Of a stretch of DNA of 64,000 nucleotides, positions 1 through 13,922 are shown piece after piece (within the stretch, counting starts at the first letter, position 1; the number at the start of each line of letters is the position of its first letter). The notes below the pieces were generated by a model. It was not told the DNA's origin, ran no database searches, and saw only the letters and a program-made list of their open reading frames with translations. The translations under genes and the position numbers were made by a program. Origin of the DNA: Eutreptiella sp. 'Long Island Sound 2002' (lineage: Eukaryota > Protista > Euglenida); the NCBI GenBank assembly GCA_964036045.1, contig OZ038378.1, forward strand, positions 24,056,001-24,120,000, read 5' to 3'.

Positions 1-7
1 TACATAA

Positions 8-32
8 CCCTGCGTGCGCGCTACAGGGTATT
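8..32 (+). repeat. Left terminal inverted repeat (25 bp, first 14 bp perfect)
   Basis: Inverted match to 5906-5930; only 7 bp of outside flank lie in the window. Confidence 0.75.
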
Positions 33-195
33 GCCGCGCGATGGCTCAGTGCGCACTACAAAACTATAGCGCGCAGCATAGCGCGCGCTATGGCTCGGGG
101 TCTTGGGTTTGTAACCCCATGTCCTAATAAGCAGGGCAAAAACGCCTATTTTTCTAAAGTTTCAGATGCTTCCGGCACCGCATGTGACGCTGTCA

Positions 196-2087
196 ATGTC
201 AGGGAAGGTTGCAAACATTTTGGGCCCCCACTATGGGTGGTCCCTGTGGAAGAACGAGGACCTTTTGGCGGACCTAGTTGAGTTTTTTTGCTCAGGGTCT
301 GCCGTCCAACGCTCTTTGTGGGCCAGGTTGGAAAAAAGGGTCCCCGTGTCTGAAGCAGAGAAGAAGCGTCGCAGGACCGAGGCTGCCAACGCCGTCACAC
401 CCCTGTCGGTGGTGGACTTGGTCCTGCTCCTGAAGATTCCAAGAAGAAGGTATTATTGCTTACGCTTTGCATGTGACATTGCGCGCACTTCCGCTCATAG
501 CACGCGCTTCGTTGACTTCTGCGCGCGCTACGTCCCCATGTTGCGCGCGCTATTTTCCTCAGGTACAAAGATTTGATTACTTGGACGAGAAGTAAGGTCC
601 CCACACACCTTTTTTCTCTCCCCTCCTATGCTAGTTTCGCCACAGAATGGAACCAGCTTGCAAGTAGGCAGCATTTACAGGTTGCCGTGCAAACAGATGG
701 GGTTACAAATCAACCCAGCCCCCACGTGGATAAGACCCGTTCTGGTTGTATCGATCCCGCCGCGGCGCAGCCCTCGCGAGGCTGCCCTGGGGTCACAGTC
801 TTTTCGCAGTGGCCCCTGCAGCACTTTTTTGACTATATATTTTTCTTTTGATTCCATTGTTTCTAACCTCCAATACCCCAGGGAGTGCCCAGCAGAGCTG
901 TGGATCATTGTGAGGGGGGATGGGTTGCCTTGTGGGGGGGAATCGTGGTGCCACATGTCCATTTCCTTTGCCAACCATGGTCACTTGGCAAGGACGTTGT
1001 CCTACCACTGGACTGTTAACGTCGCCCTTTGTGGTGAGAAGTCCACCTCTGTGTTGTCCCAGGTCTGGGCTAACAATCTTGCTTTTCTGCAGAGTGCCCT
1101 TGACAGTGGTGTGGTTCCCATCCGGGGTGCATCCAGACGGTGTAGGATTTTCTGCGGTGGGGATAGCCCTTGGCTGCGTCGGTTGTCCGGTGTCACTACA
1201 CATTGGATGGCAGGTAGTCTGTTCACTTACATGACGTGGTGCAAGTCCAGTGCAACGTGGTTGCAACAGGATGTGGATAGAACCACCGAGCGAGATGAGC
1301 AGTTGTTAGGGCTTATTGCACCTGGGGCCAAGTGCAGGCCCATGGATATATTTGGTGTTGTCCAGAGCAGGTTGTTGAAGGTGCCTCTGAGGCGGCGTCA
1401 CCTTATACCATGTGTTCTGCACCTTCTGATTTTTGTAGGGAGGCAGGTCACTGCCTGGTACGCAGATTGGCCAAGTCTGTGCGTCCCAGTACCAGGGTCC
1501 CTGTTCAGGCTATTTTTCACAGGTCTGGTTGTCACATAGCACTACAGGGGACGGCAGAGCCAGATGGGGAAGAGACTTGGTGCTTTCTAAAGGTTTGGGA
1601 GGACCTGGCCCCCCTCCTTGGGGGTGACATGAGAATGCACACAGCAGTGGTTGCCATGTACATACTACTGGGGGACATGTATGGCACAATGTTTGAAGAG
1701 GGTGCATTGCAGGCTCCAGAGGTTGCCCAGGCTTTCCAGAGGTGGGTTTGTCCAGCAATAAGATCACCTTATATTAACTGGATGTTGCACGATGCAACAG
1801 TCACTATTCAGGCCATAAGGCCCTATGGCCTAGGAATGTTTTCGGGGGATCTTTTGGAAGGGAGCAACAGGGTGCTGAAGGACATTTGGTCCTCCTTTTG
1901 TGATAGAGGTGGGGGGGCAGGAACCCTGGTGTCGCGCCGCATTAAGATGCTCAGGCAGGTTAATGAGCGTCTGTTCCTGTACTTTGAAGTACCAAGGTGG
2001 AATGGGAACTCCAGAAGCAACCTGTGCAATGCACAAAAATTGGGTGACGAGGTTCGGGCATATTTTGCGGATGAGGAACTGTGGTAG
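196..2087 (+). CDS. RAG1/Transib-like DDE transposase, ~590 aa, 2 exons, two single-base frameshifts as assembled
   Basis: Exons 196-449 and 563-2087 with GT-AG intron 450-562 (an alternative ATG lies at 166). An extra T in the run at 840-844 and a missing G near 1457 join ORFs 573/628/1332. Motifs in RAG1 order: IIVRGDG (D600-like), FCGGDSPWL (D708-like), PCVLH (DALH-like), SPYINWMLHD..YGLGMFSGDLLEGSNRVLK (cf. RAG1 TNYFHKTLAH..GSIGAWASEGNESGNKLFR, E962). Confidence 0.8.
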
Positions 2088-2371
2088 CGCGCGCTATTTG
2101 TTTTTTAGCGCGCACTACGTGCTATCTAGTGCGCGCAATGACCACTATCGCGCGCGCTATGCTGTTTTCAAGCGCCGGAACCCTTGAAATCGCGATATAT
2201 AATTGGAAGTAGCGTGCTATGACTACGCACTTCAAATGTGCCTCCCATTTGGAATGCATTGATTTGTTCCTTTTCGTCCGTTTTTTTTGGTGCTTTCGAT
2301 TTTTTTGTTACTGCATTTTCCTTTTTGTATTACTGCTGGAACAGGGGTACTTTAATGTAACCCTCTTGCCC

Positions 2372-5300
2372 ATGCAGCCCACGGGCTGGGGGTATCCGCC
2401 TCCTGCAGAACCGCCAACAACTGGTGCAGGGGCCACACGAGCAGGTGCGACACCGCAACCACCGCCACATGCAGCTGTACAACCGGGACTGCAGCAGCCG
2501 TCCACGACGCCGTGGAGCATGCAGCCACAGGTACTTGCCGTGCGCACTACTGTTTCCGTTGCGCGTGCTACGCTCTTGTTGTGCGTGCTAGCTGTCTCGT
2601 TGTGCGCACTACGCACGTCCTCGTTGCGCGTGCTTTGTCCTGTTTTCCGCAGACGCTGTTCCAGCAGCTGACCCAGTTCTCCCCAACTCAGCCTCTGTGG
2701 CCCGCGCCACAGTCCCCGTTACGAGCTGCCTCACAACAGCTGTCTCCCATGCTGTTCCCCGTTGGGTCGCCCACCTTGGGCTCCCCAGTGCGCGGCAGTC
2801 TTCCAGTGGGCCAAGTGCAGCAAGTGCTCTTCGGGCCACTGCAGCAGCAGCAGCAAATGCAGCAGCAGCAAGTGCAGGCTGCGGCCCAGCAAGTCGGCAG
2901 CCCAAAACAGCAGCAGCAGCAGCAGCAGCAGCAGGTCCAACTAAGACAGCAGCAACCCCAAGTGCAAGCACAGTTTCAGTTCTCCCCACCCGGGCCACGT
3001 AAGGGCTTCGCCTTCAACAGCGACTTCAAGAACCGAATCTGGCCCAACCAAAACAGCACCATCTGCGCCCAAGGGCCCAATTGGGCATGGCTGAAGGACG
3101 TGACACCGGCCTACCTCTTCGAGGTGGCCTTCTACAAGTTCTGGCGCCAAAGGGCCACGGCCATTGCCAAGATCCCAGACGGAGCCGTGAAACCCTGCTA
3201 GCATGACGAGAGCATTACTGGCACCTGGTGCAGTCTGGCGAACCTGTTGAACCCCTCCATGCCAACCCAAGAAGGACAAGCTGCCTGTGGAAACTGCAAG
3301 GTGGAGGAGTACGAGCTGCTGTTCTCGTACTGGGAAAGTTATGGGTGGGGTCATGTTCGGACCCACACGCCTCCGGGTGCCACCGCAAAGACCGTCCACC
3401 ACTTCTACTTCAACAAGGACCCACCGAGCTTCATCAACGCGACCGACGCGGGGGCAATGGCCTTCAAGAACGAGTGCGCCTCGGTGAGAAGTGCGGGTGC
3501 CACTTTGCTGCGGGGGTCAGCCAAGAAAGGAGCCAGTGCCGCAAGGGCACTTGCAACCGGCGCCAAAGTCAAAACCACGGCGGTCAAGGACGAGGAGCAG
3601 CCGCAGCAGCACCAAGTGCAGCAGCAGCAGCTCCAACAGCAGGCAGCCGTGCAGCAGGCAACACTGCAGCTGCTCCAGCAGCAGCAACGGGTGCAGATGG
3701 CCCAGCAACAGCAGCAACAACAACAACAACTGGCACAGGCACAGGTACGCGCTATGTTTGCCATTGCGCGCGCTTTCGACATTGTTGCGCGCGCTTCATT
3801 TGTTGTAGCACGCGCGATTTGATTGTTTGCGCGCGCTACGGCCCTACCTTCTGTCCCATTGTCACGTAGGTGGGCAGCTTCGAGCAGCTTCTGTGCCTGG
3901 GATCCCGCAGAGGGCCGTTGATGATCAGCGTGCCCGCGGACATTGCCAGGCAGTCCAAGCATGCGGCCGACTGGCTTGACGGACAGAAGGAGCAAGGCCC
4001 CTCCCCGGTGCTGGCCCGGGCTAAGCGGCAGCTGGAGGAGCTGGAGGTGGACTGGGCCGGCGCCTTTGCCGTGCCGGAGACGGAATCCGTGACAGTCCCA
4101 AGGCCCAAGAAGAAGCGTACCGAGGAGCCAGCAGCCACCAGCCACCAGCCACCTACCACCAGCCATCTCCGCCTCCCACACCACTAAGCCCCCCCACCCG
4201 CCTGGAAAGGTCCTTGCCCAGAAGACTGCCGACCAGCAGCTGCTGGCACAGGCGGCACACAGAGTCCAACGTCAGGCGGAACAGGCCAAGAAGAAAGAGG
4301 ACGAAGCAAAGAAGAAGAAGAAGGAAGAGGAGGAAAAGAGGAAGAAGAAGGAGAAGGAAGAGGAGGAAAAGAGGAAGAAGAAGGAGAAGGAAGAGGAAGA
4401 GAGGAGGAAGAAGAAGGAGAAGGAAGAGGAGGAGAAGAGACGGAAGAAAGCAGAGGAGGAGAAAGCAGAAAAGGTAATGCAGCGCGCGCTATCGTAGTCA
4501 TTGCACGTGCTATGCATCTCGTCGCGCGTGCTATGCTTCGTACTGCGCGTGCTATGCCTGTGCTATGCCTCTGCGCTACTCTTTCCAGGCAAACAAGACG
4601 GCACCGCAGCAGGCACCCCAGCCGCAGCTCGCATCAAAGCCAACACCGAAGCAGCCTGTCCCAGTCCCAGACCAGCCACAAGAACAAGGAGGTCCGTGCG
4701 GTTCCACCCCAGCCAGTACGGCTCCCAAGGCCAAGCAGCAGAGCAGAGCCGACGCCGACAAGGAGGCAAGAGATGAGCTCATGCAGCGCCGAGATTGGTC
4801 CTACCAAAAAAGCTACAAGCCTCGGTGGATCATCTACTGCACCACTGCGATCGCGCCGATGATTGTGGAGGGAGCCGAAGTCAACCCAGCATGCGCCAGG
4901 GCCCCTCAGGACCACGTGGCCGTCATCATCCCCAACGATCAGTGGAGCCCCAGCCAACAAGGGGAGGAGGAGGAGGAAGAGGACGACTGGTCGGAGTTCA
5001 TGCCCAGCTGCCAGGTGTTCTCCGCCAAAAGCAAAGCGTATGAGGAGTTGGACAAGTGGCAGTCGTGGTGGGAGACATACGAGGCCGATGAAATTGTGGA
5101 CCTCTGCCCCGACCCAAAGACCATGAGGATGTCCCCGTCCAAGCCACCGACCCCAAAGAAGAAGAAGCCCCAAGGAGACCCACCAGCCCAGCCACCAGCC
5201 CCCCCACCAGAAGACAAGGGACCTGCCGAAGCTGCAGCACCAGCAGAAGCACCAGCAGCAGCTGCACAAAAAGAAGAGGCACCAGCCCCAGAAGCAGCAG

Positions 5301-5557
5301 CAGCAGCACAAGAAGACGACGCACCAGCCCCACCACAAGAAGAAGAGGCACCAGCGGCCGCGCCACAAGAAGGAGAAGGAGCAGCCCCCAAAGAAGAAGA
5401 GGCACCAGAAGGAGCAACCGCAGAAGGCGACCCAAGCCCACAAGAAGAAGGGGATGCAGCCCCAGCTGCCACTGGGGCAGAAGACCACAGACCCGAATGG
5501 GAGAAGGAGTGGGAGGCCGAAGTGGTGGTCCAAACCATTAAGGAGATCACTGAATGA
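2372..5557 (+). pseudogene. Second transposon gene, ~940 aa, 4 exons, Q-rich and E/K-rich, unknown function
   Basis: Exons 2372-2530, 2653-3744, 3870-4473, 4589-5557, joined by phase-0 GT-AG introns of 122, 125 and 115 bp. In-frame TAG at 3199-3201; +1 frameshift within a GCCACCA 7-mer repeat near 4130-4165. Confidence 0.7.
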
Positions 5558-5905
5558 CAGCGCGCGCTATACCTGGTATAGCGCGCGCCGTAAGGCTCAT
5601 AGCGCGCGCTGTAAATATGTTGCGCGCGCTACACTGTCTGTGCCCGTGAGGACCTGTACTGTTGCACACTTTTCAGACCTTTCAGACAGTGTTTTTGCAT
5701 GTGTTTTGGGTTGGATGAGCAACAGGGAATGTTTTTGAAAAGGAAGGGGTTTTTGAGAAACGCAGGACACTGGAAAAAGCATGGTTTTGAAACATTTTCC
5801 GGTTTTGAAAAATTTGAAAAACGGGACAATATAGCGCGGTAGAGCGCGCGCAATAGGCGCGCTATAAAGGTCATATTTTTGAAAATTTGCGCGCACTATG
5901 GAAAA

Positions 5906-5930
5906 AATACACAATTGCGCGCACGCAGGG
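5906..5930 (-). repeat. Right terminal inverted repeat
   Basis: Reverse complement of 8-32 (21/25), ending GCGCGCACGCAGGG followed by AA. Confidence 0.75.
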
Positions 5931-6242
5931 AAGTCATAGCTCTCATTCTTTGTGAGACGGATTGCGTCACATCATACTTTTCTTCCATAGATTGATTTTA
6001 GTGGACATTATAGTTTTCCTTCCCCCCCGAAAAACAAAATGACAAAAAAAAAGAGCAACCAACATCACCACATGCTACTACACATGCCCAAAACAATCAT
6101 TTCAGCGTTCGTACGATCCATCATTAAAGCAATACAAACTAAGGATGCATCATCCATAATGCATAATCGATATTTCCCAAAAAAAACAGCAAATGCAATC
6201 GGAAAGACATGAAAAAAAGAAAACATAAAAGAACCCATGGCA

Positions 6243-8079
6243 TTAGACTGGTGACTAGGCTTGGGAAGGACTCGCTATGCCCCTCCTTCCCAAGCCTAGA
6301 AATGCATGAAGTCCCTAAAAAATCGTTGCAGTTTTCGATATAACCTTGAAACCACCGACGCAAATATGTTGGGTGTTTCTTCTGCCTAAGCACACAAACA
6401 ACAAAAAATAACTGCAATTCATGTCGGAGCAAAATATAGATCATGTATGTCCCATTGCTTGAGGCTTGGTACTAGAACATTGTTGGTTGTACAAAGGTAT
6501 AGGTTTTATTGCCACTGTTTCGTTAAAAATTTATAGCCACAAAAATTGACCCTAAACCGATTTTTTTCCAAGAACAGCCACCGCTCGTTTCTTCATGACT
6601 CTAGCAATTGTTGAAGCCCTTACTCCAATGCTCCTATTGGTTTTCGTTTCGTCCCTCACGGAACCATTGGTTTGTGGGACCGTGGTTCATTCCAAATTCC
6701 GTGGTTTTCTGTGGGTGAGAACTAGCAACACAGGTATAAAACCCCCAACTTACAAAATACCTTAATTATAGCACTTGACGACGCCAACCACCACCCATTC
6801 TGAAACTTGTTGGTCCGTTTTGCACAACCATGTCCGCTCTGGTTCGTGACGACTTCATACCTGATCGCTGGAATGCCTTATGGAACAATCGCTGCAAAAA
6901 TTCTCAAAACGGTCACTCACAGCAGCGCTAAAAAAGTACCTTTTCACGTAATTTTTGCGCCGAGAATTCGGAGCTGCCAAATACTACCCCCCAGTCATTC
7001 TCTTCTACATCTCTCAACGATCGTAATGAGCTACTTTTCGAGGCCTAACTCCACGACATGTCCAAATGCCGCCCAAAATACGCGACCGCGCAACTTAAAA
7101 AAGCTGCTAAATGTCGAACCCCCAACGCATAAAACGGTTGCATTTTATGACCTCGCGGACCCAAATACCAACACAGCACGTGCTACAAACCACGAAGGAC
7201 GTTGATAAAAAGGGTTTGACGGAATGTGTATCCGGGGCTCCTCGCAGTACCACTTGGAGGGAGACGCATGATGGCTAAAAAACGGACCCTGTTTTCAGCG
7301 CTGACAGCATGCTCCAAAACCCTCCACTTGACGCCCCCCGTTCTATGACCATACGAACACAAGGTCAAAGCCACATAGTACACATCGAAGAGCAACAGTA
7401 GGGCTTCGATTTGGTCGGGGGGCAGCCGCGTAACTCAAGGTTGTATTCGCGCAGCGCCAAATTCCGTAAGGACCATGATCGGAAAAATGCGATTTTTCGC
7501 CAAAATCGCTCTCACTCAAACGGCCGTATCTCGGCGCCACCGGGTCGTTTAGAGCTAAATTTTTTTTTTCCGCGACCCCGGGAGCTGTCCGGAGATGATG
7601 ATGCCCAGATTGTGGCCAGATGAGCCACAGGCGCGGCGCCATTCCTGTTGCCAATTGACCCGCGTTTCGAAAATGGACGTTTTTTCGCAACTTGAACCCT
7701 TCGCCAAACTGCGAAATCGGATCCGTTTTTCGAAATTCCAAATGCCATATGGATCATTTTTCGATGCCGTTCACAAAAATGCAGTCGAAATCGGATTTAC
7801 TGAAATTTCATTTTTCGCGATTTTTAAACGGATCTCGGGATTCTGGCCAGTAAAAAAAAAAGCCCCAAAATAACATTGTAGGGCCCGAGCTGCCATCCAC
7901 AAATATGCCTTTGGTTTGTCCGAAACTTCGTTCGTTGCCACCTGTACGGCAGCACGAATCCGTAAACATAATCAGCGGGGTCAGCTTCACAGCTGAGCGT
8001 CGCAGGCGGCCGCGGAGCCCCTCCCCCGCGGCCGGATAGCGAACGGCGGGCCTTCCGGCCCAACGGCAACAAGCGCTGA
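6243..8079 (-). mobile_element. Non-autonomous Helitron-like element, copy 1
   Basis: On the minus strand: starts A|TC at 8079; ends with a 16-bp-stem hairpin (6255-6299), 8 nt, then CTAA|T at 6243, matching the Helitron A|TC...hairpin-CTRR|T pattern. No coding capacity. Confidence 0.55.
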
Positions 8080-10799: not shown

Positions 10800-13630
10800 C
10801 AACACAATCCACACATGAGCAGGCGTTGAAGATCCACAAGCATTTATTGAACAAGTACAACATCTACCTCCCTGAGAGGATACCTGTACGTGTCCCAATC
10901 CCAGACAAGCATTCCTGCTGGCTCTGAGATCCGAGTTTGCACGCATGCTGGCGCAGAGTAGGCTCCCTGCTCCCCTGACTGCATGGCTGATCGCAAGTTT
11001 ATCTTGTATGCCGCAAAGGACACCAAAAGTTCACCAAGCGATACGCGGTGCACGCACACACATTGCCACGGGGGCTGTAGCGGAACAACTACAGCGTGAG
11101 GCCGGCACAACCGTCTCACTGAACGGCTTGACACTTGGCACCCTAATCCAGAAGACACCACACGTTATACGGAAGGAGGTACGACGCATTGAGCTGCCTC
11201 TGGACGCCATATGCCAATGCACACAACCGTCACAAAACTATCACATACCCAAGGGGCAGAACTAGCAGCACATTGTGCTCAGATCAACTGAGCAATGGGC
11301 CAGTTTCCACACCGAGCCGTCCCTGTTTACACAAAATGCACGAAACAGCACCCTCCCTTCTTAGTTGCACCTCACAAAATCGCTATGTGTGTTTGAAACT
11401 TCCATCAGACCAATACTCCACACCAGACACCCGGAATCCGACAGCAAGCCAGAGCATGCCGACAATCAGTGTGCTGCCATTTCCACAGAAATCACACAGA
11501 GAGCACGTGCGTTCATCGAGTCACACGGTATGCAGTACCCCTGTACGGCGGCACAAAATTTGCACACGGCACATACAAAATTGAAAGCATGGAATCTTGT
11601 GGCCACCCCATGGGATAAAAAACTGCACAAACTTGGGGGTTTCTGTACAGTGCTGTGCGAGACACATGTACAGAACGGAATCCTGTCTGCCAAGGAGTTC
11701 GATATTGTGGGTGTTAGCCCATCAGACTGGCAATGCCAGGCCATGGCATTGTCCCTGATTTTACAATCCGCACACAGGCACAGAATTTTGAAATTGCGTG
11801 AAGATCTGAATGTCCTGCACAGTGCATTACAGGACCCGCAGTACAGGACAGTGTACATTAGCAGGCACTGCATTCGAGAGACGCTGTGGGAAGTCCTACC
11901 CTTCCCTGACCTCCTGACACTCACCGCACCCAAGCGCCGCTCTGCCCCGCCAACCATCTTTGCATTACCGAAATGGAAGTTGCAGGAGATGATCAACTTC
12001 TTCCTCTGGAGAAACATCATTTCTTTTGCGAACCACCCCATAAAGCCGTTAGCTACAAAGGTTGGGCGATGTTTAACTCTAATGATTCGGGAAGTCAACA
12101 GCCTCTACCCTTACATGTCCCTACCCTCACTTGTCGGCGTCCGCGACATGTTTCTCTCACTCCTCACCTTGAGCAAAGGGCAGCAATGCACAGTGGTCAG
12201 GGAAAGGGATATGGATAATTGTTACTCGGAAATTCCCAAACAGAAAGCGCTCCAGGCAGTGGTGTACATAAAATCACTCATTACTGAGCAGGGCACGACA
12301 AGAGGAGAGCTGTGGTTCTCAGTGGCACGTGGAAACGACAGACACAGGGACGGACTGGGGAAGTCTGTTGACGATTTGTTTCACGTGATTTCTTTTGAAC
12401 AAGTGTATGAATACGTGGTATGGGAGTTATTGCACAACACCTGGTTCTGCATAGACAACATCCTGATGAGGCAAGGTGCTAAGGGAGTCCCCATAGGGGG
12501 CTTCCTTTCAGCGCAAATTATGATCCTCTATGCAATTGCGGTTGAGATACCCCTGATGAACCCAGAAGGTATGCAAAAGCACATGCGCACAGTCCAGCAG
12601 GTATGCAAGAAACGGCGACTCCCTCCCTTCAGTTTCACACCAGGCCCCAGCCTGACCTTCCAAAACCCTCCGGTAGTGCCAAAAAATCTCCATTTCTTCG
12701 AGGAGTATGGAATGCGCGGTTGGTTTGATCAAGAAAACAAAAAACTCGGTACCGTGACATTACAGGGTGTTACTTTTGGAATGCAGATGCTACAACTATG
12801 GGACTCACACCCGCAAGGCCGCTTTGGGTACATTGTTAATGCTGCCCCCAAGCGTGCCAGGCCATTGTTGAATACCCACTTCGCTCAGCTTAGCAACAAA
12901 TCAGCGATGCTTGCTGAGACTCAGTACCTGCAAGGTTGTTTACCTGGTGGATCCCACACAGGTACCCCCGTGCCAACAGTTCTGTTGTCCAAGTTCATGG
13001 ATAATGCCTACATAGGGTTAGTGGCTATCCCCGCAAACATGTGTGATGCTGTAGTACAGCTTGTTGAGGTGTTCCTTGACAGTTTATATAACATCCCAAT
13101 GAAGTGGGAACCACACGGGCCTGTAAATGACTGGTGTGAGTGCAGGGTAGTGACAGATCCTGAATTGGCCCTGCTTATGAAAGGTATTGCTTTCCAGCTG
13201 CCAGAAGAACCCAACCCGTCACCCGATGATGCCATTTGGGACAGATGGGTAGATGCAGCATCCCCCAACTGCCCATCGGTCGTCCAATCCATGATGCCTG
13301 CATTAAGTGACAAAGCATTGGTATACGCCTTCCACAATACCCACCGGCAAATAAACCTAGCGTCCATTGTGAGGGGATGTGGATATAAAGGCTATTGCAA
13401 AAGTTGGTGGTGGCCCTCTTTCAGGGCACGCATCCATGCTGCAGGTCTCAATACACTAATTCCAGCCAGGCTAATCACAAAATGGGTTGGGGAGGGTCGG
13501 GGTTTCAGGAGGTCTGTCGGGCCGGCTCGTGCTGCGCACTTCGCACCGGCCCTCCAGACCTCCTGATTTCTGATTTCTGTGTTTTCTGGTTTTCTGTTTC
13601 TTTTCTTTGCTTTTCTATTGTTGCTCTGAT
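10800..13630 (+). mobile_element. Penelope-like retroelement, 5'-decayed
   Basis: The RT frame continues upstream through two in-frame stops (11263, 11362) to ~10900 and includes a CxC...H linker (CQCTQPSQNYHIPKGQN*QHIVLR). A T-rich tail follows the stop codon. Boundaries are approximate. Confidence 0.7.
11365..13566 (+). CDS. Penelope-like reverse transcriptase (733-aa open portion)
   Basis: PLE-type motifs: PTIFALPKWK, WRNIISFANHP, RERDMDNCYSEIP (motif A, D at 12208), RQGAKGVPIGGFLSAQI (motif B), SKFMDN (motif C, 12994-13005). Confidence 0.85.
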   Translation: MHLTKSLCVFETSIRPILHTRHPESDSKPEHADNQCAAISTEITQRARAFIESHGMQYPCTAAQNLHTAHTKLKAWNLVATPWDKKLHKLGGFCTVLCETHVQNGILSAKEFDIVGVSPSDWQCQAMALSLILQSAHRHRILKLREDLNVLHSALQDPQYRTVYISRHCIRETLWEVLPFPDLLTLTAPKRRSAPPTIFALPKWKLQEMINFFLWRNIISFANHPIKPLATKVGRCLTLMIREVNSLYPYMSLPSLVGVRDMFLSLLTLSKGQQCTVVRERDMDNCYSEIPKQKALQAVVYIKSLITEQGTTRGELWFSVARGNDRHRDGLGKSVDDLFHVISFEQVYEYVVWELLHNTWFCIDNILMRQGAKGVPIGGFLSAQIMILYAIAVEIPLMNPEGMQKHMRTVQQVCKKRRLPPFSFTPGPSLTFQNPPVVPKNLHFFEEYGMRGWFDQENKKLGTVTLQGVTFGMQMLQLWDSHPQGRFGYIVNAAPKRARPLLNTHFAQLSNKSAMLAETQYLQGCLPGGSHTGTPVPTVLLSKFMDNAYIGLVAIPANMCDAVVQLVEVFLDSLYNIPMKWEPHGPVNDWCECRVVTDPELALLMKGIAFQLPEEPNPSPDDAIWDRWVDAASPNCPSVVQSMMPALSDKALVYAFHNTHRQINLASIVRGCGYKGYCKSWWWPSFRARIHAAGLNTLIPARLITKWVGEGRGFRRSVGPARAAHFAPALQTS

Positions 13631-13922
13631 GGTACACGCAGTGCCTGTGCTTGCCCTCAGGACTTTTCAGTGATCTGCACAGTGCCAGCATCTCCTTCCA
13701 CAACGCGCGCGACCGCTCGCGCCTGAAAAAACCCGCACAGGCCCGAATCGCCTGTTCAAAAGTGGCCTTTTTGACTGACCAGAGCATTCGGTGCACAAAA
13801 TGCGAATTTTCAAACAGCAATCTTATTTTTAAGACTAGTTTGAATTTCGAGCACCTTTAAGTCAGGGTTTCCAGGATGTCCGATGATCGCTGGTTGCGGC
13901 GCTGCAACATGTTTCTCCTCTC
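13630..13922 (-). repeat. Putative polypurine tract and 3' LTR start of the Ty3/gypsy element
   Basis: The minus strand reads GAGAGGAGAAACA then TGTTGCAGCG at 13909, downstream of pol. No second LTR is present to confirm it; the far end is a guess. Confidence 0.4.

Follow-up and report, generated by a model that had tools for sequence, protein, structure and literature searches.

A two-gene DNA transposon family with CCCT ends, 2-bp target site duplications and a predicted RAG1-fold transposase in the euglenid Eutreptiella

Introduction

The CMCT clade of DNA transposons comprises EnSpm/CACTA, Mirage, Chapaev, Transib, Plavaka, and ESTA, as well as Lanisha (Kojima 2025, PMC12730594). The target site duplications (TSDs) of this clade are 2–5 bp long, and the termini are CA..TG in most cases, with exceptions such as PlavakaA (2 bp, TGT..ACA) and ESTA (TA). 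Precedents for a 2-bp TSD are found in Mirage, PlavakaA, and ESTA, and the C(2)C and H(3-4)H motifs are reported as shared by all CMCT lineages (PMC12730594). For Transib, the TSD is 5 bp, and the ends carry a CACAATG heptamer and an A-rich nonamer, which are separated by a 12- or 23-bp spacer (PMC1131882). In this study, we analyzed a 64-kb stretch of the genome of Eutreptiella sp. 'Long Island Sound 2002' (GCA_964036045.1, contig OZ038378.1, positions 24,056,001 to 24,120,000 of the forward strand; hereafter the window), and we describe the element at positions 8 to 5930 of it, which carries a DDE transposase gene and a large partner gene.

The maize CACTA element En/Spm encodes the TnpD transposase and TnpA, and the latter binds subterminal 12-bp repeats. 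Compared with these described systems, the window element combines a predicted RAG1-like transposase with ends and TSDs unlike those of Transib, and with arrays of a 12-bp palindrome that are found well beyond its subterminal regions. We propose that it is a real transposon with a RAG1-fold DDE transposase, a 2-bp TSD, and a place in the CMCT assemblage, and we give this reading a probability of about 0.8. The best-supported position, although not a proven one, is that of an unnamed branch of the known CMCT clade.

Results

Ends, target site duplications, and copies of the element

The element is bounded by terminal inverted repeats with 25-nt arms that are 84% complementary. The outer 14 nt pair perfectly, and the window contains them only at the two ends of the element, once each. 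The ends of the family begin with CCCTGCGTG, and the termini are CCCT...AGGG. The features of the ends are as follows.

6..7: TSD, left copy (AA), matching the AA at 5931-5932
8..32, + strand: left terminal inverted repeat; 8-21 (CCCTGCGTGCGCGC) pairs perfectly with the right end, and the repeat holds the first copy of the palindrome motif described below
5906..5930, - strand: right terminal inverted repeat, pairing with 8-32
5931..5932: TSD, right copy (AA), matching the AA at 6-7

Other copies were obtained by homology search with the C-terminal piece of the transposase, which returned dozens of near-identical open reading frame (ORF) fragments from one European Nucleotide Archive (ENA) assembly, and their loci were fetched from the same assembly (loci are given below as L numbers and predicted proteins as P numbers). 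These copies are ~94-98% identical to the window element. Homology to the window begins exactly at position 8 in L002, L003, L004, L005, and L013, and it stops at 5930 in L001, L003, L005, L013, and L014. In addition, the complete copies are flanked by the duplications AA (window), AT (L003), TG (L005), and GG (L013). Thus, a 2-bp duplication is consistent in all four complete copies, a length of 3 bp fits none of them, and the probability of four chance 2-bp matches of the flanks is ~1.5e-5. The first-pass annotation of the window, which was made from its sequence alone, had already read 25-bp inverted repeats starting with CCC, flanks of AA, and boundaries at 8 and 5930. This observation is confirmed, and the boundaries hold in the other copies.

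Protein clusters at 90% identity contained up to 192 distinct members for the transposase and up to 129 for the partner gene. These cluster sizes indicate a family of the order of a hundred or more copies, and the number in the genome may be on the order of 100-200. The 64-kb window contains no second copy of the element and no Rfam match. None of the seven copies examined is intact throughout, and each ORF is intact somewhere: exon 2 of the transposase in P0066 and P0070, and exon 2 of the partner gene in P0266 (440 aa, from the cluster of 129 members).

Several copies are broken by other repeats. The 15 kb of L014 (1-14825) contain at least four fragmentary and rearranged family copies in both orientations and may be a nest of insertions. 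Meanwhile, the copies at L004 (11652 onward) and L014 (11080 onward) are broken by the same other element with the start CCCTTCGTGAACCGGCCGTTTG. This unrelated-looking element, which begins CCCTTCGTG, is probably another CCCT-ended family that inserted into the family studied here. In L001 (~6985-7071) and L002 (9113 onward), a further repeat (…GGGATGCAGCGTTCTAGGGCGTGGTGCGG…) with TAGAAC-like motifs breaks the family copy, at a different position in each. Furthermore, 6-24% of the 31-mers sampled from window positions 100-2200 were present in three estuary metatranscriptome runs (X1-X3), which hints that environmental samples contain the family or a close relative of it, possibly in expressed form.

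The transposase gene and the state of the window copy

Alignment of five copies gave a transposase consensus of 572 aa encoded by two exons with one predicted GT-AG intron. A spliced transposase of about 590 aa had been predicted by the first-pass annotation; its length was close, and two apparent splices in it are frameshifts of the window copy. The features of the gene are listed below; the conservation of the catalytic residues was counted among diverged relatives (12, 26, and 24 sequences, respectively).

166..449, + strand: exon 1, ~95 aa, helical and basic, with KKRRR; candidate DNA-binding N-terminus; ORF kept in L002 and L003
450..562, + strand: intron, GT..AG, with four motif copies
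563..2087, + strand: exon 2, predicted RAG1-fold DDE core, with +1 T near 840 and -1 C near 1455; 90 bp inserted in frame at ~698-787
919..921, + strand: catalytic D1 (D86 of P0066), motif VRGDGLP, on strand beta-1; kept in 12/12
1162..1164, + strand: catalytic D2 (D167 of P0066), motif GGDSPW, just after strand beta-4; kept in 26/26
1857..1859, + strand: catalytic E (E399 of P0066), motif E-[SG]-x-N-x-x-L-K on a helix; kept in 21/24; aligns with ExxNKLFR of RAG1L

The two frame breaks are found in the window copy, and other copies (P0066 with 474 aa, P0070, and P0008) are uninterrupted. Both change the length of a homopolymer and, the assembly being built from long reads, could be assembly errors. 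An intron at 1371-1438 as the cause of the frame change was ruled out, and other copies read through this region with one extra C. The 90-bp (30 aa) insertion at 698-787 is also confined to the window copy, and it is edged by a 10-bp near-repeat (GGGGTTACAA / GGGGTCACAG). The window copy is dead, because the partner gene carries a TAG nonsense codon at 3199-3201 in exon 2 (TGG or TTG in other copies) and a frame-shifting 7-bp insertion at ~4132-4138 in exon 3, and these two lesions are not homopolymer artefacts. In another copy, a deletion derivative, we observed a 491-aa ORF (P0067) in which the transposase, cut off shortly after the catalytic E, continues in frame into the C-terminal part of the partner.

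Fold and homology of the transposase

An exhaustive HMMER search found 351 relatives of the transposase, some of which are only 27-44% identical. The diverged relatives belong to other families of this genome or were found in metagenome or run assemblies unrelated to it; the remote ones from outside the genome sit on contigs of 1-3 kb, too short to define the element ends. Neither P0066 nor 30 diverged relatives matched any Pfam family at E up to 10, the RAG1 domains and Transposase_21 included. Sequence searches of PDB with the transposase pieces and P0066, and of Pfam, PHROGs, and PDB with all pieces of the transposase and the partner gene, gave nothing meaningful.

The structure search was more informative. 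The AlphaFold model of P0066, built on an alignment of 128 sequences, had a mean confidence (predicted local distance difference test, pLDDT) of 91.5 and a predicted template modelling score (pTM) of 0.90. Foldseek gave 49 PDB matches with E<1e-3, and all of them are RAG1, amphioxus RAG1L, or HzTransib; the next match is Hermes with E 0.013. Against the Swiss-Prot models, RAG1 was found at 1e-11 and was followed by a gap of 9 orders of magnitude. In addition, a family profile of 30 sequences (A1) matched RAG1L at E 0.005, with a conserved His and the E-x-x-N-K-L motif aligned; this is the sole sequence-level match of the family profile in PDB, and the weak match was gone when a fragment-rich alignment (A2) was used. 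A language-model search recognized RAG1 clusters at 0.95. In the shape search of the ESM Atlas, unnamed cnidarian and fungal clusters were best (template modelling score (TM) 0.77-0.82), and a Transposase_21 (CACTA-type) cluster reached TM 0.76 over 440 residues versus TM 0.71 for RAG1.

These results support a RAG1/Transib-type fold over the whole length of the transposase. In the model, the C-terminal ~475 aa is predicted to have the RAG1/Transib architecture, namely a pre-RNase H part, RNase H with D86/D167/E399, an insertion domain, and a C-terminal domain. The D-D-E triad in RAG1 order and context, as first annotated, is thus supported by its conservation and by the structure search. Meanwhile, the Cys and His pairs are not conserved in the diverged relatives: the Cys pair after GSxY is represented by C193 in 6/27 and the His pair before the catalytic E by H376 in 9/25, and where RAG1L has H(4)H, the family consensus aligns with L and D. 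Another motif, C-x2-H (C250, H253), is kept in 26/28.

The partner gene

The partner gene lies in tandem with the transposase gene on the same strand, as the first-pass annotation had stated, and it was found in every copy examined. It has four exons coding for ~940 aa, and all of its predicted introns are GT-AG introns of phase 0.

2372..2530, + strand: exon 1, P/Q-rich; start codon inferred
2531..2652, + strand: intron 1, GT..AG, phase 0, with a four-copy motif array (2559-2635)
2653..3744, + strand: exon 2, Q-rich segments flanking a ~170-aa Cys/His-rich domain A (~2990-3490)
3745..3869, + strand: intron 2, with a four-copy array at exact 21-bp spacing
3870..4473, + strand: exon 3, small conserved domain B, then a K/E-rich stretch, possibly a coiled coil by its composition
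4474..4588, + strand: intron 3, with a four-copy array
4589..5557, + strand: exon 4, domain C (~4751-5149), a P/A/E-rich tail, and a conserved C-terminus; stop codon TGA at 5555-5557

The protein thus consists of Q-, K/E-, and P/A/E-rich stretches around three conserved blocks (A, B, and C). It had no match in Pfam, PHROGs, or PDB, and nothing like RAG2, TnpA (no Transposase_24), ParB, or a dioxygenase was seen in those searches. Two language-model leads were not confirmed: domain C was recognized as nucleoside 2-deoxyribosyltransferase-like (0.93, 185 shared features), and its single-sequence fold was unusable (pLDDT 48); domain A was recognized, at a low level, as a KDZ-associated CxC cysteine cluster.

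A homologue of domain A lies directly downstream of a 36%-identical transposase in the sister family L012, although the match is weak (tblastn E 0.002, 26% over 179 aa), and in the metagenomic relative L010 the transposase is followed by a P/A- and K/E-rich gene. Furthermore, the variability of domain A at the three codon positions is 0.046, 0.035, and 0.089, the third position being the most variable. Because of these three observations, the gene appears to be an old, long-standing partner under selection and not a recent cargo.

Palindrome arrays

The 12-bp palindrome of the family (TAGCGCGCGCTA), with at most one mismatch, occurs 10 times in the 64-kb window, and all copies are inside the element, compared with 0.03 expected. 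With looser matching, there are six internal arrays, each made up of four TWGCGCGCGCTA palindromes at 21-bp spacing, and they occupy all four introns and the positions after both stop codons. Looser copies are also found at both ends of the element, one of them inside the inverted repeat itself. The numbers below are motif starts unless a range is given.

479, 498, 519, 541: array in the transposase intron
2085, 2106, 2127, 2148 (2085..2159): array from the transposase stop codon, at exact 21-bp spacing; the first copy overlaps the stop TAG
2559, 2579, 2600, 2624: array in partner intron 1
3764, 3785, 3806, 3827: array in partner intron 2
4480, 4501, 4522, 4543: array in partner intron 3
5558, 5579, 5600, 5620 (5558..5631): array from the base after the partner stop codon
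12..90: 5' subterminal copies of the GCGCGC palindrome at 12, 47, 67, and 79, with irregular spacing
5830..5898: 3' subterminal motif copies, with irregular spacing

When the six arrays are aligned, their motifs fall in register and are conserved, the 9-bp spacers between them are unrelated, and variation among copies is 0.050 at motif positions versus 0.081 in the spacers. Relatives have other motifs in the same places: TAGAAC/GTTCTA in L006, TTGAAC in L010, GGTTGAACA in L011, and GTTTGAA in L012. In all four of these relatives, an array stands immediately upstream of the exon homologous to transposase exon 2. The 21-bp phasing is seen again in L006 after the stop codon, and the L011 motif is repeated at 10-bp spacing. 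We know of no transposon described with arrays of putative binding sites inside its introns. Elsewhere in the window, the segment 30001-32000 has a G+C content of 64% versus ~50% nearby, and the strict palindrome is absent there.

Sister families and relatives

The element L011 (7069-14321, 7.25 kb) has a transposase that is 35% identical to that of the window family. It has 31-nt inverted repeats (CCCTAGTGACCCC...), its ends are CCCTAGTG...CACTAGGG, that is, of the CCCT...AGGG type, and it is flanked by CA/CA. Because this distant sister shares both features, the CCCT ends and the 2-bp length of the duplication are traits of the lineage rather than a chance feature of a single family.

Three further observations were made. 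In L011, the GGTTGAACA arrays form long inverted blocks 1.6 kb apart (12093-12141 versus 13762-13810, 92% complementary), and an extra 459-aa ORF lies upstream of the transposase. In L006 (1759-1775) and L010 (50-70), which come from other samples, two telomere-like CCCTAA repeats abut CCCT... sequence that resembles a terminus (CCCTTCCGTTC, CCCTAGAAGCCCCC); these repeats may be part of the end or mark a preferred target. In the window itself, a 733-aa ORF is found on the + strand at 11365-13566.

Discussion

Comparison with described transposons

Like the CMCT clade, the family has a DDE transposase whose predicted structure shows kinship to EnSpm, Transib, or RAG1, and a 2-bp TSD that falls inside the 2-5 bp range of the clade; PlavakaA is a precedent for its non-CAC termini. 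It is set apart from the described CMCT lineages by its CCCT...AGGG ends (CCC...GGG and not CA..TG), by the absence of conserved C(2)C/H(3-4)H motifs in the 25-27 diverged relatives, and by the lack of a Pfam match, Transposase_21 included. In addition, its host is a protist, and palindrome arrays are found in every non-coding segment of the element. The first-pass annotation had suggested an undescribed lineage near the Transib/RAG1-CACTA/Mirage/Chapaev (CMC) radiation. An unnamed branch is indeed the best reading; the rest of the claim was overstated, since the family fits the known CMCT clade by its TSD length, by the variant termini known there, and by the similarity to Transposase_21.

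With Transib, RAG1, and the RAG1L of ProtoRAG, the transposase shares the order and context of the D-D-E triad, the GS[VIL][YF] motif, a His equivalent to the H of the RAG1L DATH segment, and E-x-x-N-K/R-L. However, the TSD is 2 bp and not 5 bp in the four complete copies and in L011, and no CAC heptamer or nonamer is found at the ends of the family, of L011, or of the nested element. The ends had been called non-Transib in the first-pass annotation, and they are. The family also differs from this group in having no RAG2-like partner and no conserved Cys or His pair at the zinc positions. By sequence, no Pfam family was matched at E 10, and the profile matched RAG1L at E 0.005 only.

En/Spm resembles the family in having two element proteins, a short duplication, and a 12-bp motif in many copies, which probably serve to recruit an element protein. 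Nevertheless, the window family has two tandem genes where En/Spm has one alternatively spliced unit, its arrays extend beyond the subterminal regions to fill introns and follow stop codons, and its partner has no similarity to TnpA. Among the features of EnSpm/CACTA, neither a Transposase_21 match nor CACTA termini nor a 3-bp duplication was found, and only the fold is similar. Mirage, compared by duplication length alone, fits with 2 bp.

Proposed mechanism

We interpret window 8-5930 as one copy, now dead, of a two-gene DNA transposon family that moves by cut and paste and was active recently. The DDE transposase of gene 1 would recognize CCCTnCGTG-type termini, excise the element, and reinsert it with 2-bp staggered cuts that leave the 2-bp duplication; by analogy, its cleavage chemistry may be like that of RAG and Transib. 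The arrays would be bound by a module of the element, either the N-terminus encoded by transposase exon 1 or the Cys/His domain of gene 2. Such binding, which would resemble that of TnpA to the subterminal repeats of En/Spm, could give each co-resident family its own identity.

A more far-reaching picture can be drawn. The family would belong to a deep separate branch of protist RAG1-fold transposons that lost or never had the canonical zinc site, that cut at CCCT and make 2-bp duplications, and that recognize themselves in a distributed way through helically phased arrays of lineage-specific palindromes, present in every intron, UTR, and subterminus and read by an element protein, so that many sister families could coexist and would not cross-mobilize. 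We regard this picture as tentative and rather doubtful.

Alternative explanations

The family could be a diverged member of a named CMC superfamily, Mirage or EnSpm/CACTA, without any lineage of its own. Its 2-bp duplication, which is also that of Mirage and PlavakaA, agrees with such an assignment, as do the Transposase_21 similarity over 440 residues and the two-protein design with repeated 12-bp motifs, which recalls En/Spm. However, the absence of a Transposase_21 or any other Pfam match even at E up to 10, the CCCT termini, which are neither CAC nor CA, and the poor conservation of C193 and H376 argue against it, and we consider this origin unlikely. It is far less probable still that the element is a true Transib or RAG-like transposon whose ends and duplication length have drifted. 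RAG1, RAG1L, and Transib are its best matches among solved structures, and RAG1L is its sole sequence match in PDB; nevertheless, the 5-bp duplication and the CACAATG-spacer-nonamer ends (PMC1131882) are lacking in two families that are only 35% identical, and neither a RAG2-like partner nor a RAG1 Pfam domain was found. An unnamed branch of the CMCT clade therefore remains our preferred position.

The role of the arrays and that of the partner gene can also be read in other ways. Secondary structure is used by euglenid introns, and the arrays might act in RNA, as hairpins that define introns or pair splice sites, as structures for termination or 3'-end formation, or by setting off small-RNA silencing. 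Of the six regular arrays, four coincide exactly with introns and two start at stop codons, and neighbouring copies of a self-complementary, GC-rich 12-mer would pair in RNA. However, motif copies are also found in both subterminal regions and inside the inverted repeat, the direct 10-bp repeats of L011 are unable to form local hairpins, and the 21- and 10-bp spacings agree with the helical repeat of DNA. Moreover, the motif changes between families while its positions are kept, which suggests a co-evolving factor of the element and not a machine of the host. A function in RNA is the main rival of a protein-binding role and the less probable of the two. We lean slightly towards the arrays being putative binding sites for an element-encoded protein, a reading that builds on the family-specific sequence, the conserved placement, the helical phasing (21 bp being two turns), and the presence in untranscribed termini. 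As to the partner gene, much of its protein is of low complexity and it matches no known transposon protein family, as might be expected of host-derived cargo without a role in transposition. Against this stand its presence in all copies examined, the domain A homologue at the same position in L012, the gene of similar composition after the transposase in L010, and the introns that hold the element's own motif arrays; a cargo origin seems improbable, and we prefer to see the gene as an old partner of the transposase.

Several points weigh against our reading as a whole. We looked for empty sites with the joined flanks of four copies, and the loci compared contained no unoccupied paralogous site. 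None of the seven copies examined is free of defects. PDB contains no structure of a CMC transposase, so the PDB ranking cannot tell the Transib side from the CMC side. Likewise, the separation from described lineages is based on motifs, ends, and the absence of Pfam matches. The introns are predicted from their GT-AG borders, phase, and conservation. The binding role of the arrays is putative, and GC-rich palindromes would also fold strongly as RNA. Finally, the searches of Pfam, PHROGs, and PDB assigned no function to the partner.

Significance

In the literature, we found no description of a euglenid transposase with the RAG1/Transib fold; the search on Euglena transposons and Transib gave only a paper on Merlin. 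This study adds the exact boundaries of the element and five duplications recorded in two families, and it shows that the canonical Cys/His motifs are missing, that the partner gene is conserved, and that the array architecture is general. These findings extend the well-supported RAG1/Transib-fold transposases into a protist lineage. In addition, that this fold functions with CCCT ends and a 2-bp stagger, and without a conserved C(2)C/H(3-4)H pattern, bears on the question of which features of RAG1 are ancestral. Furthermore, the family-specific arrays in introns and after stop codons provide a test case for how co-resident transposon families stay distinct. The intact individual reading frames suggest recent activity, and an autonomous copy may exist elsewhere in the genome, which would be a candidate genetic tool for this organism.

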